Part shown: positions 11,801-57,851 of the stretch, piece by piece
Layout of the letters: every line of letters begins with the position of its first letter
How positions within the stretch are numbered: position 1 is the stretch's first letter
Notes under the pieces: model-generated
Seen by the model: only the letters and a program-made list of their open reading frames with translations
Databases searched by the model: none
What the model was told of the DNA's origin: nothing
Program-made: the position numbers and the translations under genes
Origin: Mobula birostris
Lineage: Eukaryota
Assembly (NCBI RefSeq): GCF_030028105.1
Contig: NC_092384.1
Span: 3,267,665 to 3,331,664 of the forward strand
DNA length: 64,000 bases
Direction of reading: 5' to 3'

Positions 11801-12530
11801 TTTTCTTTCACAGTTTATCCGTATTATATATTTGCTTTTATTCTTAATCATGTTCGTCTATAATATGTTCCTACATCACAATGTTTGACGTGTTGCAACA
11901 TGGCAAGAAATCACAATGTATATTGATTTTATTAGAACAGACTCAGGCAAGTACGTTGTTTTGCAGAATTACAGAATGGAAATATGAAGGGAACTTGAGA
12001 TACTGCAAGTCTGCCCCATCAGCGAGCTGTTCGTTCGCCAAGGAGCTGAAGGAGCTGGATTTCGTGCAGACCGCATTGCTGCTTGCTATAGGAAGGCACT
12101 GGGGTCACTGTGTGAAGGCAACGCGCACTCTAACTACGAGTAATTGTGTTGAATGCTTCTCCTCCGATCATAAGACCCTGTTTGACAATAATAATATAAA
12201 ATGCTGCGAAGTCCGCTTCCCTGTTTATTGGATTGACAGAAGCCGGAAGAGTTGAATGGCCTCGGTTATAGCGAGGACAAGGCCTCAAACCACGGCTTGT
12301 CTATTGCAGCAGTCCAGGACACAGATGGCGGAAGCGGTGTAGCGCAGCCTCCATGCTGGGTCGGGGGCTGCTCCTCCCGTTTATGCTCCCCTGCAGTTGA
12401 ATGACAAGGTCGGTTGTGTGCGTACATGCTTGTGCGTGTACGTTTGTCTGTTGAGAAATGCTTGTTCTTGCCGACAGCACACATGCATGATCAGTTTACA
12501 GGGCATGTTACTCAGAGACTTAGGCTATGT
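8319..12530. repeat. Segmental duplication block X, copy 1 (paralogous to ~32075-34820)
   Basis: Colinear match, e.g. 14 differences in ~285 nt over the 12.0 kb / 34.1 kb segment. Confidence 0.9.
9343..10422 (-). mobile_element. Solo LTR, same family as 6517-7822
   Basis: TGTCAT...ATGACA ends; TSD ATGTC (9338-9342, 10423-10427); empty paralogous site at ~33100. Confidence 0.9.
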
Positions 12531-13981
12531 TGATTTAAAATGAATGAGAGTACTGTAAATAAATGATACTTTGAATTGGATTTTGTATTAAAAGATTATG
12601 ATTATTTCTTTCATATGATGTGATGATTGACGCCAGACATGTTGTTGTCTAAGGAAGAGCGTTAGGCGTAATAAGCTGTAGCTTCAGCGTACACCCTTTC
12701 GGTCTGTTTTAAAGAATATCTGTTTGTCGTTGTTGTTTTGTCTTATGCAATCATTGTTATGCAATCATCGTTTTTGTTATGTTTGTACTGACCGAAATAA
12801 ATTTCATTCATTCATTCATGTATTTTTTCGAATATTGGGAGATTCTCCTGGAGTCTGTGCTTGTCAATCATGACGTGCTTATCAAATATTAAATCACAGT
12901 TTATTTAGAAATATACCCACGTGTCTATTCCAATGAGAATACACCAGATGCTTAACAGATTTGCAAACCGATTCAACCATTTTCTTTCAATAATTGATAA
13001 ATATCCCAAACTTCCCCCGATTTTGATTACAAATTACAGGTTCTGCTAATTCATTTGTAAAAGTATAACAGAAACACACGGAAATATGGAAACCGCGGGA
13101 AACCCGCCATTCCCTGTGTAAAACTGTACAAAAGATTCAAACTCCATAATACTTTCCCGCTTAGGTAAGAACTCCTCAATGATGTCCATTATAGAAATGT
13201 GGCCCACTTCTTTACCGAATTTCGTGACGCTGTGCGCCATGAGGAACCTGTTTCAACCGTGGGATGGCTCGGTTATTCAGACAAAGCAGTCCCTGTATTG
13301 ACGTTAGTTCTTATGTTAATTCAGGGCAGCAGATTTCAACGCGCTCTGATCCAATGCATTTAGAAGCTCGTTTGCTGTCTCGCGAGTCTGCGTAGGCGAA
13401 GATATTAAATTAGTCTACATTTAAAGTCTTCCTTCTGAAGAATAGCAGCGTGGTTTAAACACGACAGCAAGGAAAAAAAAACACAGTGAAATATCGACGC
13501 TGTTGGTTATACAGCTTAGTAAATGAGATAGCTATCATTGTCCATTACTTGACCTGTTAACGAAAACAGGCAATGCTGGTATGGAGAGATCAGGCAGGGT
13601 CTCTGGAATGAATGTTTTGGGATTAGATCAGACCCGTGTGTAACGGTTCCGTTGCTTATACTGTACGATTAAAGGTAAAATACAGTACAGGTACACTATA
13701 ACTGCTAACACCCTCAACTGTGCAGATTTACAGAGGGACCTTAAGGTCAAAGTTCATAGCTTCTTGATAGTGGCTGCACAAGTTGATAGGGTGGCATAGA
13801 AGAGAGAGAATGAACAATGCTGCGTTGATTTCTCTGGAACAGTGGAGTCAGAAACCTAATAGATGTTTATAAGTTTCTGAGAGTGGACAAGCAGCATCGA
13901 TTTTCTAGAGTTGCAACGTCCAAAACTAAAGGGTACGCAATTCAGGTAAGAAAGGTTAAGTTGAAAAACGATACGAGAAGC

Positions 13982-14143: not shown

Positions 14144-17100
14144 ACTTGAATTTCCAGCAACTGCAGATTTCCTCGTGTATTGAGAATGAAGTTCGTTTTC
14201 ACACAGATTACTGGGTGATTGGAATGCACTGCCGGAGGTGTTGATATTGATAGATACTTGAAGCTCTAAGATAAGCAAGTAAATATGCTGAGAACAGAGG
14301 AATAAGGACATTGCGTAGACAGAAAGGATCTCTTTAGTTAGATCTCTAACTACTCGTATTGTTAGTTTTGCACAATATTAGTGACGAAATAGCTTGTTCT
14401 CTGTTTTACTGTTCTATATTCCGTGTTTTATGATCTATTTTCTATGGAACCAAGTGACATAATCCAGAGAGATGATTCGGAATCAGAATGGAACGGGTTT
14501 CTGGAAAGACGGTGATTTTGTACAGACGCGAAATCACTGGAGCTGTAGAACAATCCGCCTGAAGAGACATTATGAAAACCAGGTGACCTAGCAATAAATG
14601 AAACAGTTTTGCCGAAGAAGTGCAACAGCCAACGAGCGATGGTTTCTATTGTACAATATATGATATAAGCTGCGGTCGGACACTTATGTAGAGGATAAAC
14701 AGGAAGGCTGATGTGATGAATTAAATGACATTGTTTGGTTTGGTTGAATTGAGTCCTATGTTCTGGGACAGTCTCCCAAGCTATTCCCAGTTGTGCCACA
14801 TCTTCGAAAGTCTTTCTCGCAGGAATGAGGATTCCGGAGCTTGTGTTGACGTTGGGGGTTTATGGGATGGTGTTGCAAGCCCCACGTCTACTCTTCCTCC
14901 TTTCACAGCCGGGTTTGGTACCGTCCATGGCCGAGCCATTCCTACGGAACCTCTGCACAATTGAACACCAACAAAATAACGTCTTGGGTGCACACTCAAA
15001 AGAGTATGGGCCGGGAACAGTAACGGGACAATAACGATACACGTTCTCATCATAAAAAAAAAGGTGGAGACGGACAGCACTCAAATGGGTGATCGATTGG
15101 AATATTGAGAATAATCTGCTCGACTATCCCCAACACACGTTAAGAAAAGGGTAAGCGTTTTCGGGAGAACGTGAGAGAATGTTACCGAAATGTTGGAAGT
15201 CACATTTGTTGATTGTCTGGATTAATTGTTATTCTTTGACCGGGGAAGGACTCGGCGTGATTTGACCAAGTGATTAGAAATCACGACTGAGCTATAGAAA
15301 ATGAATACGGACAGGTTAACTGCTCTCATGAGTGTTAAACCGAAGAACTACAATGACGTTGATCGGCAGAGGAACCGAAAAGATTCTAGTAAATAAACCG
15401 AAAGGAGTAGTGGAAACGGAATATTTTGAGGAAAGGACAAAGGGCAAAGTAACGGGACAGTCTAGATCGCTTTTCCACACAGGCTGCATGAATTCAATGG
15501 TCCGAATGCCCGCCCTCTTCGATTTCTGTCGTGTTTTGGTGAAATATCGATTAGAGTTGTTGAAATATATTTCCATTAAACAGGCCGAATAGTCTGGAAC
15601 GATGGAACGGAGTGCTGGACATGCTAATCGAGTCTCACTACAGTATTATTATATCACTGCTCTTTTGCATACAGAACTCTTTTATTCCTGCTGTTTAACT
15701 CCAGAGTCAATATGCAAATAGGGAAAGTTCGAATGTCCTGAAATTCGAAAGGTCGACCCAGAATAAACAGAAATAATCATCAAAGCGGACAATTTGGATT
15801 AATGTTGCGTGGTGCACAAACCATTGGAGACTTTGCTGTGCTTTGACTCCCACAAATTATAGCGTATTATTTTTATTTAATTATCTTCAAAATTGATCTA
15901 AGCAATAAAAAAAACACTGAACTATTACCTTTATTTAAAAAAAGCAATATTCCAAAAATCAGAAATACGAATCTAAACCAAACACATCGGGAAAACAGCA
16001 AGGTTCTGTCTCCATCGAGAATAAAGGATAAACTAAGGAAGTGAATGCCAAAATTACTGCCAATCGTAATAGCACTAAAATGTTCTCTTCTGAAAGCGGA
16101 GGGAATCAACCTTAATTACGAAAGAAGTTTTACAATTATAGAATTGCAACGTTTTCAAATGCAATTGCAATGTCTAAAGATATTGTGACAGACGCTTGGG
16201 TAGATAAAGTGGATTAGGTGCAGAGAGCTGTGAGACTAATGATGATAAATTGATTTTGATTAGTTAGACAGCACGGCCCAGTGTCTTGAAAGGACGCTGT
16301 ATGAGTCCATTATTTCTTTTTCTGCATTTAACTCTAATCAGCATCTTGTTCATAGCCTGAAGTTATTTGCATGTTTGAATCATGACCAGAGCAGATGAAC
16401 GCTCAGTGAGCAGAATTAAAGGAAACAAGAAACAGCAAACATATATACCTGGATTAAAATCTGCCGAGGTGCCAAGCTGAATAATTAGGAAATAAGTGTA
16501 AAGTACACCTCATTGGTTCGGTAATAACATGCACTGGAACGGCAGCATACTACCTCATATGGATTTGGAGAAATTTAATTTCGTGGAAAGATAAAAAAAG
16601 GATTGTAATCTTTCCTAACAGACGTTTAATACGATTGAATTGTTTTCCAGAACAAAGGAACTGGTCCAGAAAGAAGTTCAATGCATAAACGGAGTTCCAA
16701 ATGTTTCTGACAAGTACCACGTGGGAGATTGTTCATTGTTCCGTGGAGCAAAGATAATCAAATTACTACTGTGCTTACAAGCCACTGAACATTCCAATTG
16801 TTTCTGTGTTGGAGTTGCTGAGATTAATGAAGTTTCTCTAAAGAAGACAAGATAAACATAAGCTTCAAGTGCATAGAAATTCCAATTGGGAGCAATGTTC
16901 ATCTATTTTATAAATGAGATAGAATTTCACACGGGGAACAACGATCGAGGTTGGTAGACCAAAAATATAGGTAATTCTGCTTTGCAGCATAGTAGAAGAA
17001 ATGGAACAGTCTGGGAAAATGTGCGCATACGCGGCGGATAGAATGAATCCGTATGAATGTAGGGGAGATTGTACATAAAAACGATATCACCGGAAACCTG

Positions 17101-17194
17101 GAAAACCTGCTCTGACAGCTGTGCCTTCGACAAGGCATCAAGCATTGTTTGGACTAAACTGAAATGATGGCCGGTTTAATTGGCATATTGAAAC

Positions 17195-17310
17195 CTTGCA
17201 AATGCCAAGGAGCACGGAGTGAAGAAGTCTGATAGAGCAGCAGGATTAAACCATTCGGTTGCATCACCAATCAATACCACTTTTATATTCTGAACGATTT
17301 CCGACAGTTT
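17195..17310 (-). pseudogene. Candidate degenerate TM exon of gene A (frame-disrupted)
   Basis: Good acceptor tttatttttgtcag and weak donor AAG|gtttca; hydrophobic pieces VVLIG / GLILLL / SVLLGICK lie in different frames; two stops in the phase-1 frame. Confidence 0.3.
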
Positions 17311-18037
17311 CTGACAAAAATAAACATGACTCGAATATCCTCTGTCACTCGCCTGTCGGAGAGGCAGGGAATTCTGAAGGTTAATCGGAATGCCGATGAA
17401 GGAATTTCTGCTGAAAGGCAGTTGTCACCTTTCAGAACGCGACCGCTGGCTTCTGACATGTCAACCAGGGGAAGCTCCATGTCTATATTTGCTCAATAAT
17501 ACACTGTATATATTATATATCTTTCATTGAGGTACATAGACGTACAGGCGCAGTGTGAGTACGCTATATATCTTTCTCCACCCCAACATTATCAGATAAA
17601 GTAACAGATATTTCAATTGCCATCTCGCTGGACGAGAGTTCAGAGGAGCTCCCTTATCAATGCTGCAGATGGTGGACGAGTAATTAAACGTGTAAGTTGA
17701 TTTTAACGGACAACGGAGCCAGAAAGGGTTTGGAAACAAATTATGCAGGATTCAAAATTGTAGTGAAAATGTAAAGAGAGAATGACTGGGAATAAATCGC
17801 GTAAAACACGGTGCTTCGGCCGCCAGAGAGGCAGCAGCTGCCAAAGTAGCGCTCAAAGGCCAAATTTATACAATTTTGTCAAATGTTTTGGAGAAACAGG
17901 AAGTGCCTGTGATGTATAGCGGAATCATCAGAGCTAGGTCTTTCAAATGTAATCAAATGACCTTTCCTACAAAGTGATATCCCGAAATCCCGCACCGACA
18001 CACCTATTTCTCTGATAACTGAGATTGGCGGATTTAC

Positions 18038-18340
18038 CATTGTCGATGTTGATGACAGTGTAAGTGGCTAGAGCAGAAACCTGGAGAGTGAGGTGAGATA
18101 CCAGACAGGTGTAGACTGTCCCGGTTGGCACAACCTGAGTCGCTGACAATCTGCTGGAAGCTTCATATAGCCCATCCGAAGTGGAGTTGGTAACAGTCGA
18201 ACCGGTTGTAATTTTGGTGCCATCTTTATACCAAGTGAGGCTGATACCCATTGGGTAAAAGGGGAATTTAGTGCACATAAGAGCCAATGATACCAATTTC
18301 TCTGGATCTCCAGAGTAAAATTTCAATGGAGCTGGAGGAA
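18038..18340 (-). CDS. Ig C1-set domain exon (C1b), gene A
   Basis: ttcttag|TT CCT CCA...AAT G|gtaaat; 303 nt, phase 1-1, open; [27 protein letters not shown]...YTCLVSH. Confidence 0.9.
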
Positions 18341-18751
18341 CTAAGAAATGGGGGAATATACGAATGTCTGGTTGTTTACGGTTAGCTACATATTTTAGGC
18401 CATATCAGCGTTCGATTTTATTAACATAAAAGCCAGAAGTTTAAAGATTACAACTGCAGGAATTTAAGTTGGATTGGAGAAATATAGTGCTGGATAACTA
18501 ACGGAGAAAATCGTGATCATATGGGATCCGACGCGGCTGTACTCAAAGGGCTCCAGAATTAAACGTTGAAATGAATAATTATGTACAAATATATTAGCCA
18601 AATTTTAATTAATGTCGTTGAATACTCTTGTTTTATATAGTCAACACGGGCAGCTACAATTAATACTGCTATTCTATTTAAGAAGCATTAAACAAAAGGC
18701 AGTTTCGCAGTCGCAAGTTCGCATCAACTGATTCGTTTTTAAAGCTCCTAC

Positions 18752-18835
18752 CTACACAACAAAAGTCGACCCTGTTCCGTTTCCAGCCAGTGTGCCCTGA
18801 TGGGCGATGGTTCAATAATAGACTCCCGCATCTTG
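18752..18835 (-). pseudogene. 3' remnant of a second VJ-type V exon
   Basis: QDAGVYY*TIAHQGTLAGNGTGSTFVV*; the second Cys codon is TGA (18812-18814); 5' part absent, joined at caag. Confidence 0.9.
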
Positions 18836-19294
18836 GCAATTAAAGACCATCAATTTCCTCCAGACATTAAACACCACCAGATTTTGCTTTCTTTCTCGTC
18901 TTGTGGCGCCTTTAGCATCTGTCTGTTCTCAACCTAACACGGATGGAAAGCACGGGGTTCCGGCTGGATTCCAGCTTGGGATCATCGCCTCGAGGTCCGG
19001 AGCTGATGCCACCATATCACCAGCCGGCAACACCAGTGTGTCTTAGATTTAATATATTATACAAATCGGAGAAATCATGAGAATAATTTTCTTTAGACAC
19101 GAAACGCATTGCATTTCATGCTGGAGAAAACAGCTTCCGTACAAATTGTAAAGAGCTTATTTTGTACGTAGTTAATAAGAACCTATGAGCGGTCACAGGG
19201 AAGTCCAGCGAAAACGATTAAATGCGGAGATCATTTAAATCTGGTTTATAGTTACCCGACTTTTTTTTATGATAGTTGAAATCCATAGTCTCAC

Positions 19295-19597
19295 CTGTGC
19301 TGTAGTTGATGATGATGTAAGTGGCTAGAGCAGGATCCCGGAGGGTGACGTGAGGTACCAGACAAGTGTAGACTGTCCCGGTTGGCACAACCTCTGTCAC
19401 TGACAATCTGCTGGAAGCTTCATATAGCCCATCCGAAGTGGAGTTGGTAACCGTCGAACCGGTTGCAATTTTAGTGTCATCTTTATACCAGGTGAAACTG
19501 ATATTGGTTGGGTAAAAGGGCGATGTAGTGCACAGTAGAGCCAAGGCTTCCGATTTCTCTGGATCTCCGGAGTAAATTTTCAATTGAGCTGGAGGAA
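19295..19597 (-). CDS. Ig C1-set domain exon (C1a), gene A
   Basis: ttcttag|TT CCT CCA GCT CAA...ACA G|gtgaga; 303 nt, phase 1-1, open; [14 protein letters not shown]...YTCLVPH. Confidence 0.92.
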
Positions 19598-20024
19598 CTA
19601 AGAAATATTGGAATAGATGGATGAATGGTTGTTTACGGTTAGCTGTATATTCTCGGCAATATCAGCGTTCGATTCTATTAACATAAAAGCCAAATATTTA
19701 AGATTACAACGGCAGGAATTTAAATTGCAATGGGGGAAAATAGTTCTCGATATCTAACCGAGCAAATCGTCGATCATATGGGATCAGTGGCGCCTGTATT
19801 TTAATTTTCCGCAACTCAAAGAGCTCCAGAATTTAATGTTGAAATGAATATTTATGTACAAATACATTAGCCAGATTTTGATTAGTATCGTTGAATACTC
19901 CTGTTTTATATAGTCAACGCGTGTCGCTACGATTAATACTGTTATTCTATTTAAAAGAAATTGTACAAAAGACAATTTCTCAGTCGCAATTTCGCATCAA
20001 CTGAATCGCTTCTAATGCACCTAC

Positions 20025-20345
20025 CCAACACAACTAAAGTCGACCCGGTTCCGGTGCCAATCAATGTGCCCTGATGGGCGATTGTACAATAATAGACTCC
20101 CGCATCTTGTGGACGCACGTTCACTATCTGCAGAAAGCCGCTGAATTTAGTATTGAAGCCGTTCGATGCTCTGGCGTCTTGTTTTGGGTTGATGTAATTA
20201 TTTTTACCCTTTTTCCACCAATATATTTCAACGCGGGAATCCTCTGGCAAAGAGGAAGGGGAACAATCAAAAGAGACATTTTCACCTTTGCTGATTTTGG
20301 CGATTTTAGGGAGTTGTGTAACTTTGGCAGAAGATTTAACTGACC
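20025..20345 (-). CDS. Germline-joined VJ-type Ig V domain exon, gene A
   Basis: tttaatttag|GG TCA...TTG G|gtaggt; 321 nt, open; SVKSSAKVTQLPKIAKISKGENVSFDC...IYWWKK...LQIVNVRPQDAGVYYC...GTGTGSTLVVL, with canonical Cys-Trp-Cys and a J-like GxG motif. Confidence 0.93.
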
Positions 20346-20481
20346 CTAAATTAAAGGAATATCATTTCCGAATCAGTAAGAATCATTACAAAGAGTGTAT
20401 ACAACTGTAAAGACGAACAAGGGCAAACATAAAGCGATATTCAATAACTGTTCCATTCTGAAGAATGGGAAAGCTATTTAC

Positions 20482-20536
20482 CCGTAAAATATATCATCCA
20501 AAGAAGCAGACAGTAAGGTCCCACGCTGGCCAACAT
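20482..20536 (-). CDS. Signal-peptide (leader) exon, gene A
   Basis: ATG...MLASVGPYCLLLWMIYFT G|gtaaat; 55 nt, phase 1, in frame with the V exon after a 136-nt intron. Confidence 0.85.
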
Positions 20537-20604
20537 TCTGGTACAAGTGATCACAGGGATGGCGCAGTCGCGAACTGTTTCTCTGGGTTGAGCTGCCACA
20601 GGGT

Positions 20605-20675
20605 GTGCTGCGTCAATCTTTCCGCGAAAGTAGTGCGGCTTCTGACCAATATGTGGTGAGATTTACTTTCGTTTG
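20605..20675 (-). promoter_or_regulatory. Putative proximal promoter of gene A (IRF-E-like, RUNX, CCAAT, CRE-like motifs)
   Basis: actttcgttt 20665-20674, tgtggt 20652-20657, ccaat 20646-20650, tgcgtca 20609-20615, all within ~70-140 nt of the ATG; motif match only. Confidence 0.4.
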
Positions 20676-20870
20676 TGCTTATGCGAACCGCAGCGCCATC
20701 GTCTTCGAAACCGATTATGTTTTTAGATTGTATTGTTAATAACCTACGGTGTGCAATTTCATTGGATGAACTAAATCCCTGCGGCCCGAAATCTCACTGC
20801 ACTATCTCCTCACTCATTCCCACGTGTCCACTCTCGTTGTCACACCACTTCCCAGCCCCATCACGAACTC

Positions 20871-23669
20871 CATAGAAACCATAGAAACCATAGAAACTGC
20901 AGCACAGAAACAGGCCTTTTGGCCCTTCTTGTCTGTGCCGAACCATTTTCTGCCTAGTCCCACTGACCTGCACATGGACCATATCCCTCCACACACGTCC
21001 TATCCATGTATCTGTCCAATTTATTCTTAAATGTTAAAAAAGAACCCGCATTTATCACCTCGTCTGGCAGCTCATTCCATACTCTCACCACTCTCTGTGT
21101 GAAGAAGCCCCCTCTAATGTTCCTTTTAAACTTCTCCCCCCCCCACCCTTAACCCATGTCTGCTGCTTTATTTTCTCCCCTTGCCTCAGTGGAAAAAGCC
21201 TGCTTGCATTCACTCTACCTATACCCATCATAATTTTATATACCTCTATCAAATCTCCCCTCATTCTTCTACGCTCCAGGGAATAAAGTCCTAACCTATT
21301 CAACCTTTCTCTGTAACTGAGTTCCTCAAATCACGGCAACATCCTTGTAAACCTACTCTGCACTCTTTCAACCTTATTTATGTCCTTCCTGTAAATTGGT
21401 GACCAAAACTGAACACGATACTCCAGATTCGGCCTCACCAATGCCTTAAACAACATCATCGTAACATTCCAGCTCTTATATTCAATACTTTGATTAATAA
21501 AGGCCAATGTACCAAAAGCTCTCTTTACGACCCTATCTGACTGTGACGCCACTTTTACGGAATTTTGTATCTGTATTCCCAGATCCCTCTGTTGTACTGC
21601 TCTCCTCAGTGCCTTATCATTAACCCTGTATGTTCTACGTTGGTTTGTCCTTCCAACATGCAATACCTCACACTTGTCAGTATTAAACTAATCTGCCATT
21701 TTTTAGCCCATTTTTCCAGCTGGTCGAAGTCCTTCTGTAGGCTCTGAAAACCTTCCTCACTGTCTACTACACCTCCAATCTTTGTATCATCAGCAAACTT
21801 GCTGATCCAATTTACCACATTATCATCCAGATCATTGATATAGATGACAAATAACACTGGACCAAGCACTGATCCCTGTGGCACACCACTAGTCACAGGC
21901 CTCCACTCAGAGAAGCAATTCTCCACCACCACTCTCTGGTTTCTTCCATCAAGCCAATGTCTAATCCAATTTACCACCTCTCCATGTATACCTAGCGACT
22001 GACCGCCTATGCGGGACTTTGTCAAAGGCCTTACTGAAGTCCATGTAGACAATATCCACTGCCTTCCCTTCATCCACTTTTCTGGTAACCTCCTCGAAAA
22101 ACTCCAATAGATTGGTCAAACATGACATACTACGCACAAGGCCATGTTGACTCTCCCTAATAAGTCCCAGTCTATCCAAATGATTGTAGTTTCTGTCTCT
22201 CAGTACTCCCTCCAATAACTTACCTACTACCGACGTTAAAGTTCCTGGCCTATAATTTCTCGGATTACTTTTCGATCCTTGTTTAAACAACGGAACAACA
22301 TGAGCCACTCTCCAATCTTTCGGCACCTCACCTGCAGACAGCGACATTTTAAATATATCAGCCAGGGCCCCTGCAATTTCAGCACTAGTCTCCTTCAAGG
22401 TCCGAGGGAACAACCTGTCAGGTCCCGGGGATTTATCCACTTTAATTTTCCTCAAGACAGCAAGGACCTCCTCATTTTCGATCTGTACAGTTTCCATGAT
22501 CTCACTGCTTGTTTCCCTTAATTCCATGGACTTCATGACTGCTTCCTTAGTAAACACAGACGTAAAAAAAACTATTTAAGATCTCCCCCATTTCCTTTGT
22601 TTCTGCACATAGCCGACCACTCTGATCTTCAAGAGGACCAATTTTATCCCTTACAATCCTTTTGCTCTTAATATACCTGTAAAAGCTCTTTGGATTATCC
22701 TTCACTTTGACTGCCAAGGCAACCTCATGTCTTCTTTTAGCCCTCCTGATTTCTTTCTTAAGTATTTTCTTGCACTTCTTATACTCCTCAAGCACCTTAT
22801 TTACTCCCTGCTTCCTATACACGTCATACAACTCCCTCTTCTTCTTTATCAGAGTTGCAATATCCTTTGAGAACCAAGGTTCCTTATTCCTATTCACCTT
22901 GCCTTTAATCCTGACAGGAACATACAAACTCTGCACTCTCAAAATTTCTGCTTTGAAGCTTCCCACCTACCGATAACATCCATGCCAGAGAACAACCTGT
23001 CCCAATCCACGCTTTTTAGATCCTTTCTCATTTCTTCAAATTTGACCTTCTTCCAGTTAAGAACCTCAACCCTAGGACCAGATCCATCCTTGTCCATGAT
23101 CAAGTTGAAACTACTGGTGTTATGATCACTGGAACCAAAGTGCTCCCCTACACAGACTTCTGTCACTTGTCCAAACTCGTTTCCTAACAGGAGATCCAAT
23201 ATTGCATCCCCTCTAGTTGGTTCCTCTATATATTGATTTAGAAAACTTTCCTGAACACATTTTACAAACTCTAAACCATGTAGACCCCTAACAGTATGGG
23301 AGACCAAATCAATATATGGAAAATTAAAATCCCCTACCACCACAACTTTATGTTTCCTGCAGTTGCCTGCTATCTCTCTGAAAATTTGCACTTTCAATTC
23401 TCTTTGACTATTGAGTGGTCTGTAATACAATCCCACTAATGTGGCCATACCGTTCCTCAGCTCCACCCACAAGGACTCAGTAGACAAGCCTTCTAATTTG
23501 TTCTGCCTGAGCACTACTGTAATATTTTCCCTAACAAGCAATGCCACTCCCCCACCTTTCATTCCTCTGCCTCCAACACATCTGAAACATCGGAACCCTG
23601 GAATATTAAGCTACCAGTCCTGCCCCTCCTGTAGCCAAGTTTCACTAATTGCTACAACGTCGTAATTCT
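20871..23669 (-). mobile_element. 5'-truncated CR1 LINE (endonuclease + RT, frameshifted)
   Basis: (catagaaac)3 tail at 20871-20897; overlapping ORFs 22939..23562 (EN: GDFNFP) to 21085..21303 (RT: KSPGPD, YMDFSKAFD, FADDTK); absent from the paralogous site ~57025. Confidence 0.95.
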
Positions 23670-25516
23670 TTTAACATCTACTAAACCTACCCTTCTCCAC
23701 TCACTATTTCCTCGCGAACCTTCCACCCTTGCCACCCTTGCATCCAACAACAAAACAAACTATGGCGAAGGCACCAAAACTCTAATAGCTTTTGACAACT
23801 TCTATGCGCTTTGTACATAATCCTCCTGATTTTTCCGATAAAATGGCAAAATTTCTCGGAGGTAAAATAAGTTGTTGATTTCACAGTGTCCTCGGTTTGT
23901 GCTAAGCCTCTTTGTCGGAGGATTGCGTTATTTCATGTGAAAATTCTGCCAATGATGCGAAACCATTTTAGATGTTACTGTTGAGAGACATTAAGCTAGA
24001 GTACGGCAGAGAAACAGCAGAATCATCACCATCTTCCTTAAATGAGTGAGTTACGCGCAATTCACCAAGAGTTTGTCTGGAAACTGATTTGAGTTTAACA
24101 GGGAACAGGTAGAAATCATTTTACGACCAGTGTTATGTTTATTTTGTGTAATTTCTCCTAAACCACTAACCTTTTAATGATAATCAGAGACTATGATTAA
24201 TTATTCCTCCTTTTTTTCTGCTTTTCTGCTTTCCTCAACGCTGAAAATCTTCCCGCATTCCGCACACCTTATCAAATTACTTGGTAATATTCAGTGATAC
24301 AAACCGATCGGCTTTGATGAGGCAGGGTGGAACAGAGAACTTGATTTGTTGTCTGGATGGTTGTACTTTCGCATGCTTTGGGGTGATTTAATAATAATTT
24401 GGAACACACATATTGCAGGTTTTGTTTTAAACGGAGGCAGTGTTCAATTTAAGAGAGAAACACACACACACATACACACACACACACAAACACGTTTGCT
24501 AAATTCCGCAAATGGAGGATGTCAGATGCTCAGTCAGAGGTTAATGTAGTAAAGGGTCGAGGACGTAAGTGGAAGGAAATTCCATCCTGTACCGATTGAA
24601 GAACTTAAACGTCAGAGTAAGTCTCACCGAATCCTATTCCATGGCGTTCTGTCTCCTGAGTCTGTTGGTCTCGGCATGTTGGTGAAGTGGGACACAACTT
24701 TCAGTGCTTGAACGGTTGATCAATTTCTTCTGCAGAAATAATATTTGTTTCAGTTCGCATGGAATACTGGGAAACATCTATCGCATGGAAACATAGCTAA
24801 TTATATTGGTGATTGGCTCAATGGTTGAACGCAGAGCGTGACGGTTGAAGGTGGTCTCGGACCGGTGGCTTATGACTAGAGGCGTTACCAGAAGGGTCGG
24901 TGCAGCATCTTTTGCTGTTCATTGTTTATATAAACTATTTGCATGTGAACGCATGAGGAGTGGCGATAAGGTTTCAAATCATATTAAAATAGCTGGTATC
25001 GTAAAGTACGAAGAAGGTAATGGACAACTGTAGGAAAATTTCAGTCAGTTAGGTCAGTGGGCCCAATATTAGCAAATGCTTTTAGTTTCCGTATGGTTAA
25101 TCTGCATGTTGCTTGCATGAACTGCGATTTCGTCAACATCCAGGACTTTTTCTCTTTGCACTTTCTCTTCTTCATTTCCCGATCTTGGGGTGGGGGAATT
25201 TTGAACAAAAAATAAATATTAACATTTCAATTCCACGCCTATGTGTTGTTTTCTAACTGACTGCTTCTGAGTGCTTCGGTAAAAATAAACACAATTCATT
25301 ACCAGAAGTTGAAATTTAGTGTCCTCGTCTGAGTCAAAACGGGTTTTTATCTGGCTATGGCGAAAATCTGAATTTCATTCATTCTGCAATAAACTACATT
25401 AAACTGAATGCAATAGTCTGGAATTATTTCGGACTTATATTAAGGCATCAGAAAACACACGGGTCAATAACTTTTGTTTGATTGGCTTTGAATGAAGCAG
25501 TAAGAAACCATAATTT

Positions 25517-26480
25517 TAGAAACATAGAAACATAGAAAACAGGTGCAGGAGTAGGCCATTCGGCCCCTCGAGTCTGCATCTCCATTCAGTATTATCTTGG
25601 CTGATCATCCAACTCAGAACCCTGTACCAGCATTCTCTCGATACCTCCTGACCCATTTAGCCACAAGGGCCATATCTAACTCCTTCTTAAATATAGCCAA
25701 CAAACTGGTCTCAACTGTTTCCTGTGGCAGAGAATTCCACAGATTCACCACTCTCTGTGTGAAGAAGTTTTTCCTCATCTCGGTGCTAAAAGGGTTCCCC
25801 CTTATCCTTAATCTGTGACCGTTCGTTCTGGACTTCCCCATCATCGGGAACAATCTACCTGCATCTAGCCTGTCCAATAACTTTCGAATTTTATACGTTT
25901 CAAACAGATCCCGCCCCCCAATCTTCTAAATTCCAGCGAGAATAAGCCTAGTCGATCCAGTCTTTCCTCATATGAAAGTCCTGCTATCCCAGGAATCAAT
26001 CTGGTGAACCTCCTTTGTACTCCCTGTATGGCAAGACTGTCTTTCCTCAGATTAGGGGACCAAAACTGCACACAATACTCCACGTGTGGTCTCACCAAGG
26101 CCTTGTACAACTGTAGTAGTATCTCCCTGCTCCTGTACTCGAATCCTCTTGCTGTGAATGACAGTATAACATTCGCCTTTTACACTGCCTGCTGTACCTG
26201 CATATCCACTTTCAATGACTGGTGTATAATGACAGCCAAGGTTTCGTTGCACCTCCTCTTTTCCTAATCGGCCACCATTCAGATAATAATTTGTTTTCCT
26301 GTTTTTTGCCACCAAAGTGGATAACCTCACATTTATCCACATTAAATTACATCTGCCATGAAATTGCCCACTCACATAACCTATCCAAGTCACCCTGCAT
26401 CCTCTAAGCATCCTCCTCACAGCTAACACTGCTGCCCAGCTTCGTGTCATCCGCAAACTTGGAGATGCTGCATTTAATTC
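25517..26480 (-). mobile_element. CR1 3' fragment (shared with 58706-59610)
   Basis: tagaaacatagaaacatagaaaa tail; ORFs 25614..26507 are RT C-terminal; same insertion point in the paralogue. Confidence 0.9.
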
Positions 26481-27795
26481 CCTGCCTGTAAGTATGATTG
26501 GGAACATCCAGCCTTAACTTCACAATGTTTGCTGAAGGGCAGTTTCCTACAGCTCAGTTGCTGGAGAGCTCACAGTCAAAAACGGTTTTACAACCATCAG
26601 TTCCAAACCTGGCTCAATTAACTTATGTGTTTATCACTTATTATGTTTATCTCATAACCGATGCTCGACTGCGGCAGGATTCAACATTGAGTATACAGCA
26701 TGCGTCAGAGAAAAAATGATACTTCTCAGACAGTTAATTGCCATATCACAATGCTCAATCACGATATATTCCTATGATTGAGCATTTAATAGAAGAAAAG
26801 ACATTCGCAAGTGTACCACAACTGAGTGGTTACCAGAACATTCGCCAAAATCCTAGGTAATTCATCTAGTTCCGTGATCATGGTATAGCGATTTCTCCGT
26901 CGATTTTAATAACTTTACATATATCCACTGTAAATTTCTTTGTGAAAGTAATCGAGCTGACTCATGCAGGGAGGTATCTATCTCCTGTAGGTTTCACGTT
27001 CTTAGATATATCGGAATTTGCCATTGTGAATCAGAAGAGAGAGGGTATATCTAAAATCAGTGCCCAGTACGCTCCCCAGCTGTTGCCAGAAATCCAGATT
27101 GATGTTCAAGGGATACCAGTGAAGCAATGTTAGTGTTAGGTGTACCTCTGACCGAAAGAAAGAGTTGAGGTGGATTATTGAAACATGCCAGCTGTGAGGC
27201 CAGCGTAACCTTGCACGATATTTATCAAGCTTGAGCGCGTGTATTCACAAAACGTATAAGCAGTTTTTCGTTCGAACCTACGTTGGAGACCCGTAGTCCA
27301 AAAATAAAGCGTCGAATGAATTGTTGTTCCCAAGGACTTCATACGGCTGCATCCACTGACATACGTAGGCCTGATCTGGAATAAATTTGTGGAGTACTCG
27401 ATCTGTGTGTGTAAGAGCGGGAGAGAGAGGGAGAAGTGGCGGTGGGGTTTGGCAGAGAGATAGCGAGAGAAGGTATTAACGTTTCAAATGTGCAGGAAGT
27501 ATGCTGACGCTGAAACGTTAATAATAAAATGAAAAAAAAACTTAGCATGCAAACGCATTCAAGAGCCATGGTAATTTCTGTTAACATCCATCATTCTCGT
27601 TTAGAGGGCATTCTACCACATCGCATATGTGTCTGTGAGTGTGAGAGAGAAACTGAATTAAATATATCGTGCAGACAGAACAAAATATACTGCCTGAGAA
27701 GTCTATTCTTGAGGTTACTGTTCTTATTCCCCACAAATTAAGAACAATGTTAAATGCTTGGCCAAATGTAAACCAGGGAAAATTACTCAATTCTA

Positions 27796-27797
<2 letters not shown>

Positions 27798-27826
<29 letters not shown>

Positions 27827-27840
27827 GTGGGGGGGGGGGG
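27798..27840. repeat. (GT)n microsatellite followed by a G-run
   Basis: Direct reading. Confidence 0.95.
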
Positions 27841-37973: not shown

Positions 37974-37975
37974 TT

Positions 37976-39760: not shown

Positions 39761-40647
39761 TCTAACCAGGTTCTAAATATCCTCAGTATGAGTAACCTCC
39801 GTTTCCGATCCATCCAAACGTCTCACATTTCACCTGTGCTCATGCGTTTGCGATCCGATGACGAATTAACTGTTTGCAGTTCCAGAACATAGTATATGCA
39901 TATTGGAAGACCATAAGCTATCAACCGGATGGATACCGGACTCTACTGGAGGATCGTAACTTTGGCAAAGTACTGCAACCGATTTCATCCGCTAGATATA
40001 AGGCCACGAACGGGTTCAGTACTTTGGGAACTTCGACCTGAAATAAGGGCTTCAATTTGGTAAATTGATACATATCCCTGTACCGCTTAGGTGTACTGCT
40101 TGTTTCTTCTTGTCAAGCAACGGACATTGCAGTTAAAATTCAATCAGGTAAAACAAATTCCAGGTTTGGCACGTTTAGTACTTGGGATTCCGTTACGAAT
40201 AAATAACGTCGACACTTTCCATTTTTCTCGGCGGTGAATCGACTGCGTCGTCCCTATGATAAACCATTTCTGATTTCTTGGTCTCTGCCACGGCGATAGC
40301 GGCATAGCTCCAGTTCCTATGAGGCGGCCTCTGCTTGGTCTGAAAAATCCACATTAGCCGGCATATATCATTGCTTTCATTTTTTAGTCACATTGAGTTT
40401 CATGTTAAATATAGTCCCGAGAACTGCGCAAAATCACCACTGTCTCAAAAGACTACCAACTTACAGTGCTTGTTTCATTACCTGCAAGTATAAATAGTTG
40501 AACTTTTGTGGCGGCTTATCTCTATTTTATCTCTACCTATTCTGCCACATAGATGAATTATACTGTATCCTGTACTAAAAAGATCAACGGTTTGCACAGC
40601 GGACGAAATGCAGAATTAGGGTCATAGTCAACTCATCCACCACCTTA

Positions 40648-40815
40648 CTAAATAGCAGAGCAGTTGGATAGAACGAAATGCTTATACTTGCTCCAAATTC
40701 CCACGTTAATACGTACCTGCGCGTAGACAGTCCTCTCTTGATTCAAGGACCCTGGAACTTTCCGGGATTTGGTAAGATCTAGTGCAGCGTACGGCATCAT
40801 CGCCTCGCTTGTAGA
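40648..40815 (-). CDS. Cytoplasmic terminal exon, distal copy (ITIM-like MPYAAL + ITSM TVYAQV), gene B
   Basis: tttcaatctatgcag|TCT ACA AGC...ATT TAG; open; STSEAMMPYAALDLTKSRKVPGSLNQERTVYAQVRINVGIWSKYKHFVLSNCSAI*. Confidence 0.75.
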   Translation of the reverse strand, partial: STSEAMMPYAALDLTKSRKVPGSLNQERTVYAQVRINVGIWSKYKHFVLSNCSAI

Positions 40816-41687
40816 CTGCATAGATTGAAACACATTTTAAAAGTGCATGAGCCAGAAACGATCAATACACACAAACATACAATGCCGATTATGAATCTCT
40901 ACAGCCTTCATCAACGCACCTGCACGGACAGTAAAAAAGAAAATAACATACATCGCGTCGACAAAGCTCCTCAGTATGATCTTTGATATCCGGTAAATTA
41001 CCTTAATTTCAATACTTGCTTGATGTTCGACTTTACATTCACAAAACGACAACTTCTCGCCAAGAATTAAAAGTAAGTAATAAGTAAGTTCAGCTACAGA
41101 CCATGTTAGTGCTTGCAACGACATACGGTAATTTCAGTTTTTGATTACTAGCTTCACTTAGTCATAAATGAAAAGCCTATTTCCGGCTACATTTTGTAGT
41201 TAAGTCCGTGCCACAAACAGAACTAGCCTGTCACTTTCTTTTGAGGATACAGTACAGAATAGGGAACTGCTATTCCAGCAGTAGTCTGAAGGTACGACCA
41301 GACCGCCCCAGGCAAGGACGGCAGGTATGATCAATATTCATGTCATTGCTCTGGAGTTAAAAGCATCCAATAATAAATCATCTGTTTTGTTGTTAGCAAG
41401 CAAGGTTGTTAGAAAGTGAGTTAAAAATATCAGCCTAGCAAAGTAGGATATAATCTGTTATCAATGTTAACAGACAAAATATATTAGAAACATGAAACAT
41501 TAAAGAAAAAACCTGCAGTGCAATACAGGCCTTTCGGCCCACAAAGCTGTGCCGATCATGTCCCTACCTTAGAACTACCTAGGCTTTACCCACAACCCTC
41601 TATTTTTCTAAGCTGCATGTAGCCATCTAGTAGTCTCTTAAAAGACCCTATCGTTTCCGCCTCCTCCACCGCCACCGGCTGCCCATG

Positions 41688-46447: not shown

Positions 46448-47598
46448 GTGATTGTATTTGCCTCCTCAACACCGACTGAACATGCAAGTTAATATTTAGG
46501 GTGTTCTGCACAAGGACTCCCAAGTCCCTTCACATCTCAGATTTGTGGTTTTGCTCCCCGATTATAATATAGTCTGTACATTTATTTCTTCTGCCAAAGT
46601 TCATGACAATACAATTTCCAACACTGAATTTCATTTGCCACTTTCGTGCCCATTCTCCTAATCTGTCTGTCCTTCTGCAGCCTAACTGTTTCCTCAACAC
46701 TACCTGCCCCTTTTAGTTTCTAACCTGTTTCTAAATATACTCAGTATGAATAACCTCCGTTTCCGATACATCCAAACGTCTCACATTTCACTTGTGCTCA
46801 CGAATTGTGATCCGATGACGAATTAACTGTTTACAGATACAAAACATCGTATATGCATATTGAAAGACCATAAGCTATCAACCTGATGGATAGCGGAATC
46901 TACTGGAGGATCGTAACTTTGGCAAAGTACTGCAACCGATTTCATCCACTGGATATAAGGCCACGGACAGGGTCAGCCGTTTGGGAACGTCGGCTTGAAA
47001 TAAGGGCTTCAGTTTGGTAAATTGACACATATCACGGTACCACTTAGGTGTACTTCTTGTTTCTTGTTGTCAAACAAGCGACATTGCAGTTAAAATTCAA
47101 TCAGGTAAAACAAATTCCAGGTTTCGCACGTTTAGTATTTGCGATTCCGTTCCGAATAAATAACGTCGACACTTTGCATATTTCTGGGCTGTGAATTGAC
47201 AGTGTCGTTCTCCCTATGATAAACTATTTCTGATTTCTTGGTCTCTGCCACGGCGATAGGGGCGTAGGTCAAGTTCCTATCAGGCGGCCTCTGCGTGGTC
47301 TGAAAAATCCACATTAGTTGGGAAAAATCATTACTTTCATTTTTTAGTCATACTGAGTTTCATATTAAATATAGTCCCGAGAACTTCCCAAAATCACCAC
47401 TATCTCAAAAGACTACCAACTAACAGTGCTTGTTTCATTACCTGCAAGTATAAATAGTTGAACTTTTCTGGCCGCTTATCTCTATTTTCGCTCTACCTTA
47501 TCTGTCACGAAAATGAAATATACTGTATACTTTAAGAAAAAAAATTCAACGGTTTGCACAGCAGAGGAAAAGCAGAATTAGGGTGAACCATCACTTTA

Positions 47599-47766
47599 CT
47601 AAATAGCAGAGCAGCTGGATGGACGGAAATGCTTATACTTGCTCCAAATTCCCACGTTAATACATACCTGCGCGTAGACCGTCCTCTCTTGATTCACTGA
47701 CAATGGAACTTCCCGGGGTTTGGTAAGATCTAGTGCAGCGTAAGGCACTATCACCTCGCTTGTAGA
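47599..47766 (-). CDS. Cytoplasmic terminal exon, proximal copy (ITIM VPYAAL + ITSM TVYAQV), gene B
   Basis: tttcaatctatgcag|TCT...TAG; phase 0 matches the upstream 38-nt exon; STSEVIVPYAALDLTKPREVPLSVNQERTVYAQVCINVGIWSKYKHFRPSSCSAI*. Confidence 0.85.
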   Translation of the reverse strand, partial: STSEVIVPYAALDLTKPREVPLSVNQERTVYAQVCINVGIWSKYKHFRPSSCSAI

Positions 47767-48973
47767 CTGCATAGATTGAAACAGAGAAATATACACATTT
47801 TAAAAGTGCAGGTGCTAGAAACGATCAGTAAGCACAAACATACAATGCCAATTATGAATCTGTACGGCATTCATCAACGCATCTGCACGGTCTGTACATC
47901 GCGTCGACAAAGCCCCTCAGTATGACATTTGATATGCCGTACATTACCTTAATTTCCATACGTCTTGGTATTGGACTTTACAGTCGCAAAATGACAACTT
48001 CTCGCAAAGAATTAAATGTAAGTAATAAGTAAATTCAGCTACAGACCATGTTAGTGCTTGCAACCACATACGGTAATTTCAGTTTCCGATTACTAGCTTC
48101 ACTTAGTCATAAATGAAAAGCCGGTTTCGGCTACATGCTGTAGTTAAGTCCGTGCAACAAACAGAACTAGCCTGCCACTTTCTTTTGAGGATACAGTACA
48201 GAATAGGGAACTGCTATTCCAGCAGTAGTCTGAAGGTACGACCAGTCCGCCCAGGCAAGGACGGCAAGTATGATCGATATTCATGACATTGCTCTGGAGT
48301 TAAAAGCATCTAATAAAGATCATCTATTTTGTTGTTAACAAACAAGGTTGTTAAAAAGTGAGTTTAAAATATCATCCTAACAAAGTAGGATGTAGTCTCC
48401 TATTAAAGTTAACAGACAGATTATATTAGAAACATCAAACATAAAAAAAAAACTACAGTACAATGCAGACCCTTCGGCCCACGACGCTGTGCCGATCATG
48501 TCCCTACCTTAGAACTACCTAGGCTTTACCCATGGCCTTCTATTTTTCTAAGCTGCATGTAGCCATCTAGAAGTCTGTCAAAAGACCCTATTGTTTCCGC
48601 CTCCACCACCGCCACCGGCAGCCCATTCCACGCACTCTCACTCTCTGCGTAAAAAACTTACCCCTGACATCTCCTCATATTGGATGCTAAATACTTTTTT
48701 TGCTGTCTAGAAGACAAACGCAGAGATTTCTAGTTTCATTGTTACGCGGTTGATAATGCTAAAATTGTCTACAAATTAAGCTGATGGTAATTAGAGGAAG
48801 AAGCGAGTGTCAACTGTCCTGCGGGCGTGGATATCCAATCCGCATCTTGATGATAATATTGTAAACTAATAACAAAATACCCACGACAAAGAACCTGTAG
48901 GTACACATATATATATATATAGTGTATTAGTTATTATGTTTTACATACAATTCAATCGGGTTTGGATACATAC

Positions 48974-54290: not shown

Positions 54291-54846
54291 TGAAGTCGTG
54301 TGGTGAAAACAAAAGCACAAGGGCGACCAACCTTCTATCAGCCCAGGATAGAGAGAGTGGGTACAAACAGAAGGATAACGTACGAGTATTTCAAAATCCC
54401 TGGTCCCCATTAAGCTTTGTGCACACAAGTTAGCTGGGATATCAGTGCTTCCCAAAAAATGCAGAGAGAGTCTGTGGGCCGGATGAATGGGATAAGTTTT
54501 GTTGGATGAGAGTGGCATTGCGAGAAGCCGAACATGAACGGATTAATGGACATGGTCGAGCTGCTGTCGACAGTCAATGCCACGGTAGGTGTGGAGGGAT
54601 TAAGAAGACAGAGAAGAAGAAAACCCAAAAGAAATTTGAAAAAGAACTGTGCCAACATCGTATTGAGATTATGGAGTCACGGTGATTTACGTTAGAGGAG
54701 CATAAATCATGGCCCGCGCTGGCGTGCCGATATGTACGATGTAATCAGTTGTAACCTACTGGAATGATGAAGGAATAGATAAAACTTCCCTCTCACTCTT
54801 TCTTTACCCACCTTCCCCTGCACGTTCAGCTAATTCAGATTCTTAC

Positions 54847-54957
54847 CTTTATTTTTCCTTGCTATACATCGCTTCGCAATGAGAAGAACCAGCAATATAG
54901 ACACCAAACCGCTCAATGCACATACGAAGGTCATGACGTTATTGATAGTCCTAGCTC
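54847..54957 (-). CDS. Transmembrane exon, gene B
   Basis: tttcaattttccag|GA GCT AGG...AAT AAA G|gtaaga; 111 nt, phase 1-1; ARTINNVMTFVCALSGLVSILLVLLIAKRCIARKNK (uncharged TM, basic stop-transfer). Confidence 0.9.
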
Positions 54958-56467
54958 CTGGAAAATTGAAATATATTAGATACAAATGAAAACTCTTGGC
55001 CGTTCAGACTAATAAATCCCCTTGTCTTTGAAACTGATAAAACATCTGAAATTCAGCCACTGTTTTAATTTCCTGTAAAGTAAAAACGTAGTAGACAGAT
55101 AGACATTGGATTTCGTAAATTCAATCCGGAAACAAAAAAAAAATGCATATATATATATATAAATCGGTATTTCTAATTGATTAATGATGTTTAAAAAACG
55201 TTTGTCAAAACATACATTGCTTTCAGGTGTCACTTTATGAAACTGCTGCTTTCAGCGAGCTATAAGGCTTTTCATCCTCTGGGGAAGTTTGTATTTAAAT
55301 TCGCATAGTTTTGTGCCTTGTTGAATGGAACTTTCAATATCTTTGCACTCTTCCGGTATGCACAATGCCATACCAGATACAGGGAATGAAGAGTTGTGTT
55401 TCGGCTTGGGATGGACACTGCCCTGTGTATACTTTCAATACCCCGCTCTGATTCACTTGACAATCAAAGCGAACGGTAAAGCGACACTTGTTAGCAGACT
55501 ACTGGGAACAACATTTCACTGGAAATGAGCTACTCTTCGCCATTGTGACGGGGAAGCGGAAACAATGGTGGCATTGTTGCAGCGAAGTTCATTTAATTAA
55601 AAGCAGAACAGGAGGAAAGGAGACTGGAGGTAAACTGGACAAATGAATTGAGTCACGGGAATTGCAATTTGATCCACACAATTTATCAGATGAAAACGTA
55701 TAAAGAAGTACATATAACGTACATATAAAGTATCTGGAGAACATCCTTTCATGATAATCAGAAACATGTTGGATATTTTGGCTTCATAGAGGGAGAGGAT
55801 ACAAATAGAAAGATAACGTATCCAGTATTTCAAAATCACTGGCTGCCATTAAGCTCTGTGCACGCAAATTAGTCGGGTTATCAGTACTTTGAACCCCACA
55901 CCCCCACAAAAAAAAATGCAGAGAAAGAGTTTGGGAGCGGATAGATGGGATGTTTTGCCTGAATACGACAAGGTTAAACCTGATAGATTATTGGAGGAAA
56001 TTTACTTGGCAATTAAAGGCGATTTGTTTTCTGTGGACAATAAACAGCACCAGATTTGCTCCTTTTCGCGTCTTGTGGCGCCTTTAGCATCTGTCTGTTG
56101 TCAACCTAACACGGATGGAAAGCACGGGGTTCAGGCTGGATTCCAGCCTGGGATCATCGCCTCGAGGTTCGAAGCTGATGGCACCACATCACCGGCCGGC
56201 AACACCAGTTTGTTATAGATTTAATAAATTATACAAATCGGAGAAATCATGAGAATAATTTTCTCAGGACACGACACTCATTGCATTTCATGCCAGAGAA
56301 GGCAAATTCCATGCAAATTATAAAAAAAAAACTTATTTTGTATGCATTTAATAAGAACCTATTAGCGGTCACATGGAAATCTAGTGAAAACGATACGATG
56401 CGGACATCGTTTAAAACTGGTTTATAGTTACCCGACTTTTTATGATAGTTGAGATCCATAGTCTCAC

Positions 56468-56770
56468 CTGTGCTGTAGTTGATGACGATGTAAGTGGCTA
56501 GAGCAGAAACCCGGAGGCTGACGTGAGATACCAGACAAGTGTAGACTGTCCCGGTTGGCACAACCTGTGTCACTGACAATCTGCTGGAAGCTTCATATAG
56601 CCCATCCGAAGTGGAGGTGATAACAGTCGAACTGGTTGTAATGTTGGTGCCATCTTTATACCAGGTGAAACTGAAATCCATTGGGTAATAGGGAGATGTA
56701 GTGCACAGAACAGCCAAGGCTTCCGATTTCTCTGGATCTCCGGAGTAAATTTTCAATGGAGCTGGAGGAA
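56468..56770 (-). CDS. Ig C1-set domain exon (C1c), gene B
   Basis: ttcttag|TT CCT...ACA G|gtgaga; 303 nt, open; 23 nt differences from C1a; flanks paralogous to C1a. Confidence 0.9.
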
Positions 56771-57820
56771 CTAAGAAATAGTGGAATAGATGGATGAATG
56801 GTTGTTTACGGTTAGCTGTATATTCTCGGCAATATCAGCGTTCGATGCTATTAACATCTTCGAAACCGATTATGTATTTAGATTTTAATGTTAATATCCT
56901 ACGATGTGCAATTTCATTGGCTGAACTAACTCCCTGCTGCCCGCAATCTCACTGCACTATCTCCCCACTCATTCCCACGTGTCCACTCACGTTGTCACAC
57001 CACTTCGCACACCCACCACGCACTCCTTTAACATCTACTTAATCTACCCTTCCCCGACTCACTGCTCCACGGCTGTTTCCTCGCGAACCTTCCACCCTTG
57101 CCACCCTTGCATCCGACAATAAAACGAACTATGGCGAAGACACCAAAACCCTAACAGCTTTTGGCAACTTGTATGCGCCTTTTACATAATCCTCCTGATT
57201 TTTCCGATAGGACGGCAAAATTTCCCTGAGGCAAAATGAAGTTGTTGATTTCATACTATCCTCGGTTTGTGCTAAGCCTCTTTGTAGGAGGATTGCGTTA
57301 TTTCATGTGAAATTACTTCCAAAGTCGGGAAACCATTTCAGATGATACGGTTGAGAGACATTAAGCTAGAGTACGGCAGAGAAACAGCAGAATCATCGCC
57401 ATCTTCCTTAAGTGAGTCAGTTTCGCGCAATTCACCAAACCTTTGTCTGGAGACTGATATGAGTTTAACTGGGAACAGGTAGAAATCATTTTACGACCAG
57501 TGGTTTGTTTATTTTGTGTAATTTCCCATAAACCACTAATCATTTAATGATAATCAAAGACTATGATTAATTCTTCCTCCTTTTTTTCTGCTTTCCTCAA
57601 CGCTGAAAATCACCCTGCATTCCGCACACCTTATCAAATTACTTGGTAATATACAGTGACACAATCTGATCGGCTTTGATGAGGCAGGGTGGGACAGAGA
57701 ACTTGATTTGTTGTCTGGATGGCTGTAATTTCGGATGCTTTGGGATGATTTAATAATAACTTGGAACACACATATTGCAGGTTTTGTTTTAAACGGAGGC
57801 AGTATTCAATTTAAGAGAGA

Positions 57821-57851
57821 AACACACACACACGCACGCGCGCGCGCGCGC
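57821..57851. repeat. Mixed (CA)n(CG)n alternating purine-pyrimidine tract
   Basis: acacacacacacgcacgcgcgcgcgcgcgca. Confidence 0.9.

Follow-up and report, generated by a model that had tools for sequence, protein, structure and literature searches.

A Mobula birostris gene with a germline-fused VJ exon belongs to a SIRP-like V-C1 receptor family of cartilaginous fishes

We analyzed an exon in which V and J sequence are fused (VJ exon, 20345..20025, minus strand) within a 64-kb stretch of Mobula birostris DNA, the whole of which is here called the window. With a probability of roughly 0.88, this exon codes for a V-set domain that is the membrane-distal, ligand-binding part of a cell-surface IgSF receptor that does not rearrange. 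The gene in which it forms the second exon is an ordinary spliced receptor gene and not a germline-joined Ig gene; it is one of the copies in a multigene V-C1 family that occurs across cartilaginous fishes, with its nearest relatives in a devil ray and a stingray. It is a further copy of a publicly predicted SIRP-like V-C1 receptor family and involves no new principle.

The VJ exon is 321 nt long and contributes the last leader residues together with a complete V-set domain that has a built-in G strand. Its 106-aa translation is free of stops (SVKSSAKVTQLPK...CSPSS...YWWKKG...DAGVYYCTIAHQGTLIGTGTGSTLVVL; the product is also given as SVKSSAKVTQLPKIAKISKGENVSFDCSPSSLPEDSRVEIYWWKKG...FLQIVNVRPQDAGVYYCTIAHQGTLIGTGTGSTLVVL), keeps the canonical Cys, Trp, and Tyr residues, and has GTGTGSTLVVL as its J-like end. 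The splice sites conform to consensus (acceptor tttaatttag/GG and donor GTG TTG G/gtaggt, the slash marking the exon border), with phase 1 on both introns. Pfam profiles for ig (E 1.1e-10), V-set (E 8.8e-09, profile positions 8-109 of 109), and I-set all matched above their curated thresholds, and since the V-set profile was matched to its last position, the G strand is included in the match. A V domain running from strand A to strand G and ending in GxG[TS]xLxV thus lies in a single exon, as in non-rearranging VJ-type V-set exons. A plus-strand reading of 20025-20345 was rejected, as it has stops in all three frames. The preliminary description had reported a 321-nt exon that runs from strand A through DAGVYYC into a J-like sequence and a phase-1 donor; this was borne out, on the minus strand, which had not been specified.

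The same description had noted no CACAGTG in or beside the exon, and we found none between 13488 and 23882 of the window, the nearest exact copies lying at 13482 and 23882. The VJ exon has no copy of the more permissive CACNGTG within 450 nt of its 3′ end. A scan for RSSs, which had been proposed as a check, was run over 18.6-20.8 kb with CAC-anchored heptamers, 12- or 23-nt spacers, and nonamers; it gave nothing beyond the chance level of the rest of the window, and no credible RSS was found anywhere in the 64 kb. The window contains V-C1-TM receptor genes and transposons only, with no Ig or TCR cluster that has constant exons and RSS-bearing paralogues.

The exons around the VJ exon, all on the minus strand, form a receptor gene. 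The leader exon L1 (20536..20482) codes for MLASVGPYCLLLWMIYFT and, with its last base, begins a Gly codon before a phase-1 donor (G/gtaaat); it was located by tblastn with residues 1-19 of P0158, a paralogue from Mobula hypostoma, at 89% identity. The 136-nt leader intron (20481..20346) makes the leader split. Another leader candidate, beginning MEQLLNIALC and followed by a 44-nt intron, was rejected because tblastn with P0158 placed L1 at the position given. Downstream of the VJ exon lies a C1-set exon, C1a (19597..19295; ...YTCLVPH...INYST), which is in phase 1 at both ends and matches the Pfam C1-set profile at E 9.5e-12.

To these gene models we compared contigs from three runs of the same species, whose RNA nature was guessed; the comparison covered positions 14750-20700. 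In a 108-nt contig from one probable RNA run (X2), position 20025 is joined to 19597, the intervening 427 nt being skipped with GT..AG borders on the minus strand, at 97% identity (3 mismatches). As three of its 108 bases are off, this contig may stem from an allele or a close paralogue, and it shows V-to-C1 splicing for the VJ gene, an allele, or a very close paralogue. It also fixes the C1a acceptor at 19597, so that a candidate acceptor at 19603 was discarded. A gapless 162-nt contig (92% identical) is colinear with the germline across Cys-CDR3-J. A third contig, of 153 nt (91% identical), is unspliced through the leader intron, which indicates that the runs also hold unspliced or genomic material. 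Exact 31-mers of the VJ exon were found in none of the three probable RNA runs, and none of the public runs listed held the exon as RNA; it was present in four DNA runs of the probable source sample.

A second C1-set exon, C1b (18343..18037), is predicted from the genomic sequence. It has an open frame, intact splice sites (acceptor tttcttag/, donor G/gtaaat), a Pfam C1-set match at E 2.9e-10, and 78% amino acid identity to C1a. In the C1a-C1b intron sits a dead V remnant, placed at 18755..18871 by tblastn and self-blastn, with clear V-exon homology for 18835..18755 only. This segment reads QDAGVYY, a stop at the Cys position, and then TIAHQGTLAGNGTGSTFVV, with a GNGTGSTFVV end; a dead paralogue with the same fused end had indeed been described at 18752-18835. 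By self-blastn, 18048-18835 aligned with 19305-20109 at 84% identity. The homology of the remnant ends at 18835, which corresponds to 20109 of the V exon, and this leaves the remnant without some 236 nt of its 5′ part. The intron downstream of C1a, homologous to 56005-56477 of a second locus described below, abuts the middle of a V exon at 18832-18836, and with such a junction the V-C1-C1 layout looks, from the sequence, as if two V-C1 units had fused or recombined unequally, and not like an old three-domain design.

Toward the 3′ end, tblastn with residues 213-249 of P0001, a homologue from the stingray Hemitrygon, revealed a probable TM exon (16009..15929) that encodes (D)RTLLFSRCVWFRFVFLIFGILLFLNK, with an inferred acceptor and a G/gtaat donor. 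The predicted TM segment has Arg residues within or at the edge of the membrane span. A possible short cytoplasmic tail exon (14958..14863), which resembles the tail of P0001, is doubtful; its frame does not match the TM donor's phase, and part of it lies on a high-copy repeat, which leaves the 3′ end of the gene uncertain. The repeat covers about 40 nt of the putative tail exon (14895-14935) and recurs with differing flanks in many unrelated contigs of all three runs. The tail held in common with Hemitrygon P0001 may be an exonized repeat or a gene-model artefact. Upstream of the gene, a LINE with RT and endonuclease-like ORFs on the minus strand (20871-23667) is inserted in the VJ-exon locus only. 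Its near edge (20871) is 335 bp upstream of the ATG (20536), from where it may affect the promoter.

Self-blastn further identified, at 62-32 kb, a paralogous second locus. It comprises a C1 exon (56774..56469), a TM exon (54982..54845), and two tyrosine-motif exons (47772..47668 and 47302..47135), which are duplicated at 40821..40717 and 40342..40178 within 38120-48630. The copy at 40342..40178 has an in-frame stop and a one-residue gap. This locus has no counterpart of 19684-20702, the leader and V part, as a result of a 1,018-bp deletion with its junction at 56857, and is a headless inhibitory-type gene. Tyrosine motifs of the forms xYAxL and TVYAQ are found in this neighboring gene and in the paralogue P0158, whereas the VJ gene has the Arg-containing predicted TM and the doubtful tail. 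Downstream of both loci is a duplicated block (8318-12531 and 32076-34825, 88-91% identity). Together with the pair 18048-28387 and 56005-62149, it shows the window to be, for the most part, a single large duplicated unit broken by transposons. Tandem low-complexity repeats, of RLEA/GDLR type in one frame, occupy 9576-10048 and are similar to 6516-7174.

We next placed the V domain among known proteins with an exhaustive phmmer search of 1.84 billion representatives, which gave 692 matches at E<=0.001. The best single-domain matches were all cartilaginous-fish proteins, and the closest were P0001 of Hemitrygon akajei (E 4.4e-51; 77% identity by tblastn) and P0158 of M. hypostoma (78.5%). Skates, sharks, and Callorhinchus gave V identities of 44-53% overall (Amblyraja and Leucoraja, ∼51-52%; Callorhinchus, 44-46%), and further members came from Scyliorhinus, Heterodontus, Mustelus, and Heptranchias. 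The remainder of the best 150 of the 692 matches consisted of giant multi-Ig proteins that scored by summed domains. Ig-named proteins within these 150 were a Merluccius Ig kappa V and a Pogona Ig lambda-like protein, which reached E values of ∼5e-13 to 4e-12 through three to four summed V repeats; conventional cartilaginous-fish Ig or TCR V domains did not occur among the best 150. Under a profile of the family V domain, members scored 86-162 bits and a viper V 57 bits, and the Ig kappa and lambda V domains at hand scored 16-23 bits. No close relative was found among rearranging Ig or TCR V segments. When the V-only alignment was searched for homology to named short V proteins (Ig/TCR V, NKp30), one family member only was returned.

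In an ML tree of 70 V domains, in which the only outsiders were the hake Ig kappa, the Pogona Ig lambda-like protein, and the viper V, the window V grouped with P0158 and P0001 in a shark-plus-ray clade. The few Ig outsiders came out as a separate clade, with a branch length of 1.33 substitutions per site and an unreliable point of attachment (an "open" fork). The usual architecture of the family is leader-V-C1-TM-tail, mostly with one C1 domain and often with ITIM/ITSM-like motifs. Its members are named inconsistently in databases. The commonest automatic name is of the SIRP type (tyrosine-protein phosphatase non-receptor type substrate 1-like, signal-regulatory protein beta-1-like), and others are immunoglobulin lambda-1 light chain-like, tapasin-related protein-like, NCR3 ligand 1-like (NCR3LG1-like), PD-L1-like, CD276 homolog, and MHC class II beta-like. 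In the Amblyraja V-C1-C1 protein model P0006, two tandem V-C1 genes that lie 22 kb from each other appear to have been merged, with the second V exon skipped (exons at 15181-15504, 17107-17415, 37910-38233, and 39883-40191 of the genomic sequence L001). Two-C1 members in the databases may in part be such read-through models.

The fused end, in the form [G]NG[TS]G[ST]x[LIV]x[VI], was present in all of the ∼95 member V domains. It is also encoded without interruption in the germline of other species. The two tandem V exons of Amblyraja radiata L001 (15181-15504 and 37910-38233) run to ...GNGTGSTLVVL G/gtaagt, and a V exon of Callorhinchus milii (genomic sequence L002, 6316-6640) runs to ...GNGNGSRLIVY G/gtaagt; all have a phase-1 donor, as does the VJ exon, and no CACNGTG lies within 450 nt of them. 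The fused state is thus conserved in other germlines, in agreement with the earlier proposal that it is a family trait. Its presence in skate and chimaera indicates that the trait predates the elasmobranch-chimaera split, a dating point that is given by established phylogeny. The VJ exon itself has GTGTGS (20046-20063, minus strand) versus GNG[TS] in about three quarters of the ∼95 V domains and in the dead remnant. The change of Asn to Thr (GTGT for GNGT) removes the N-glycosylation sequon NGT.

Searches with profiles and models compared the family with named receptors. Within the V-C1 envelope, a V-C1 profile run against PDB sequences scored SIRP-alpha (2wng) at 68.4 bits, an Ig lambda-type chain at 67.4, and UrIg2 (9dmx) at 63.5, which puts the three at about the same distance; domain 3 of SIRP-alpha added 45.9 bits. 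Under a V-only profile, the V domains of Ig kappa, V-NAR, and TCR-beta reached 44-48 bits, and the SIRP-alpha V was outside the best 60. For C1a alone, the best PDB sequence match was UrIg2 (9dmx, E 9e-20). The AF2 model of the V-C1 part of the paralogue (P0158:20-228) had a pLDDT of 88.5, and the J-like stretch was folded as a strand. In Swiss-Prot, the structure closest to this model was that of rat SIRP-alpha (E 2.8e-15, 29% identity), ahead of Skint, PD-L1, and butyrophilins; Foldseek against the PDB was non-discriminating, with antibody light chains, PD-L1, and TCR chains at indistinguishable E values. Taken together, these ranks mean that "SIRP-like" fits the architecture and the best match, and is not demonstrated orthology.

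The preliminary description had offered two origins for the exon, a pre-RAG-type VJ domain or an old germline-joined rearrangement. What stands is a germline VJ-type exon without an RSS; the germline-joined Ig/TCR reading does not, since the gene has no close rearranging relative, a TM exon is present, paralogues bear ITIM/ITSM tails, and the family is older than the elasmobranch-chimaera split. We reject a recent origin as a germline-joined Ig gene. A very ancient origin of this kind, in which the family would descend from a rearranging Ig/TCR-type gene that was RAG-joined in the germline and later gained TM and ITIM exons and expanded, is to our judgment highly improbable. RAG germline joining has happened repeatedly in shark Ig clusters, and the V-C1 architecture and split leader would be in line with it, as would the parity of the Ig lambda-type chain with SIRP-alpha in the V-C1 profile and the rank of Ig kappa, V-NAR, and TCR-beta V domains above SIRP V in the V-only profile. 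The small tree likewise attaches its few IgL V domains beside the window-V clade, but on a very long branch, with poor support and from two Ig sources only. Germline-joined Ig genes are, moreover, present in cartilaginous fish (PMC12227049). Against this origin, the family profile scores Ig V domains far below family members, conventional Ig or TCR V domains of cartilaginous fish are missing from the best 150 of the 692 phmmer matches, the motif GNGTGSxLxV lacks the Phe/Trp of FGxG, and TM segments with ITIM tails are unlike Ig or TCR. The fused exon is common to rays, skates, sharks, and chimaera, so any joining would predate their split and carry no testable footprint. From these comparisons the very ancient origin appears to have nothing in its support, and we rate it as unsupported. 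We also consider it rather unlikely that the VJ-C1-TM family is an independent, membrane-bound relic of the pre-RAG precursor, as close to Ig/TCR and UrIg2 as to SIRP and not a SIRP orthologue. If it were, the family would be a further candidate for the type of gene that the RAG transposon entered.

Another explanation accepts the VJ exon as intact and leaves its identity unaffected, but takes the gene to be a decaying product of local rearrangement, non-functional or barely expressed. Several observations point that way, namely the lack of exact VJ-exon words in the three probable RNA runs, the dead V remnant within the gene, the out-of-phase tail frame on a high-copy repeat, the LINE 335 bp from the ATG, the loss of leader and V from the sister locus through the 1,018-bp deletion, and the loss of the family GNGT sequon. 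Yet the frames of leader, V, C1a, and C1b are all open, the canonical Cys, Trp, and Tyr residues and the consensus splice sites are intact, and two other ray species have predicted intact proteins with 77-78% identity; we hold decay to be a minor but real prospect. That the ORF and its motifs are a chance resemblance can be dismissed, given the phmmer E value of 4.4e-51 to a stingray protein in a library of 1.84 billion proteins, the Pfam ig, V-set, and I-set matches above curated thresholds, and the leader and C1 exons that flank the VJ exon in correct phase.

For the preferred reading, a non-rearranging cell-surface receptor, function can be proposed by analogy. The V domain would bind a protein ligand, as in SIRP-type paired receptors, and the ITIM/ITSM-tailed copies, such as the neighboring gene in the window, would inhibit. 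With its different, Arg-containing TM and its short or degenerate tail, the VJ copy, if it works at all, may serve as a partner of the activating or decoy type. The exon had been made to seem rarer than is warranted; a built-in J-like G strand is standard in non-rearranging V-set receptors, where fused V-J is the rule, and the family is already in public annotation. It is worth recording as a family that is large, inconsistently named, and undescribed in the literature searched.

Among known systems, SIRP is similar in several respects. A built-in J is a known condition of SIRP, and both have a non-rearranging N-terminal V domain with a J-like G strand, followed by one or more C1-set domains and a TM segment. 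The family may also have the layout of paired receptors, in that some paralogues carry putative inhibitory tails with tyrosine motifs and others a different TM and a candidate short tail, and SIRP-alpha gave the highest V-C1 envelope score and the best reviewed structural match. SIRP-alpha, with its V and subsequent C1-set domains, was proposed in 2009 to be related to the antigen-receptor precursor (PMC2785349). The resemblance has limits, as SIRP is V-C1-C1 whereas the family mostly has one C1 domain, the two C1 exons of the VJ gene looking like a recent local duplication or fusion, and, for the V domain alone, the sequence resembles SIRP V no more closely than Ig/TCR V.

Germline-joined Ig genes carry Ig constant exons and are close copies of rearranging Ig clusters. 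The VJ gene is like them in having V and J contiguous in the germline and in coming from the same animal group, for which such genes have been named (PMC12227049), but its V domain lacks close relatives among Ig genes and is part of a TM/ITIM receptor family. Among genes that do not rearrange, non-split VJ exons (NKp30, PRARP, UrIg, and UrIg2) are an established category and have been discussed as relics of antigen-receptor precursors (PMC12227049; PMC10751288). Such single-exon VJ genes bear on how antibodies and TCRs arose, since the RAG transposon is believed to have split a gene of this kind (PMC12227049). NKp30 (NCR3) has a one-exon V with a GxGNGT-type end and without an RSS (PMC12227049; PMC10751288), a likeness drawn here by description; unlike the VJ gene, it has no C1 domain. 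UrIg and UrIg2, also from cartilaginous fish, have a single-exon VJ and a split leader, followed by C1-type domains (PMC12227049). They differ in that UrIg has 3 C domains and is secreted and UrIg2 has 9-11 C domains, its V aligning in part only (profile positions 40-199), whereas the VJ gene has one or two C1 domains and belongs to a family with ITIM/ITSM tails.
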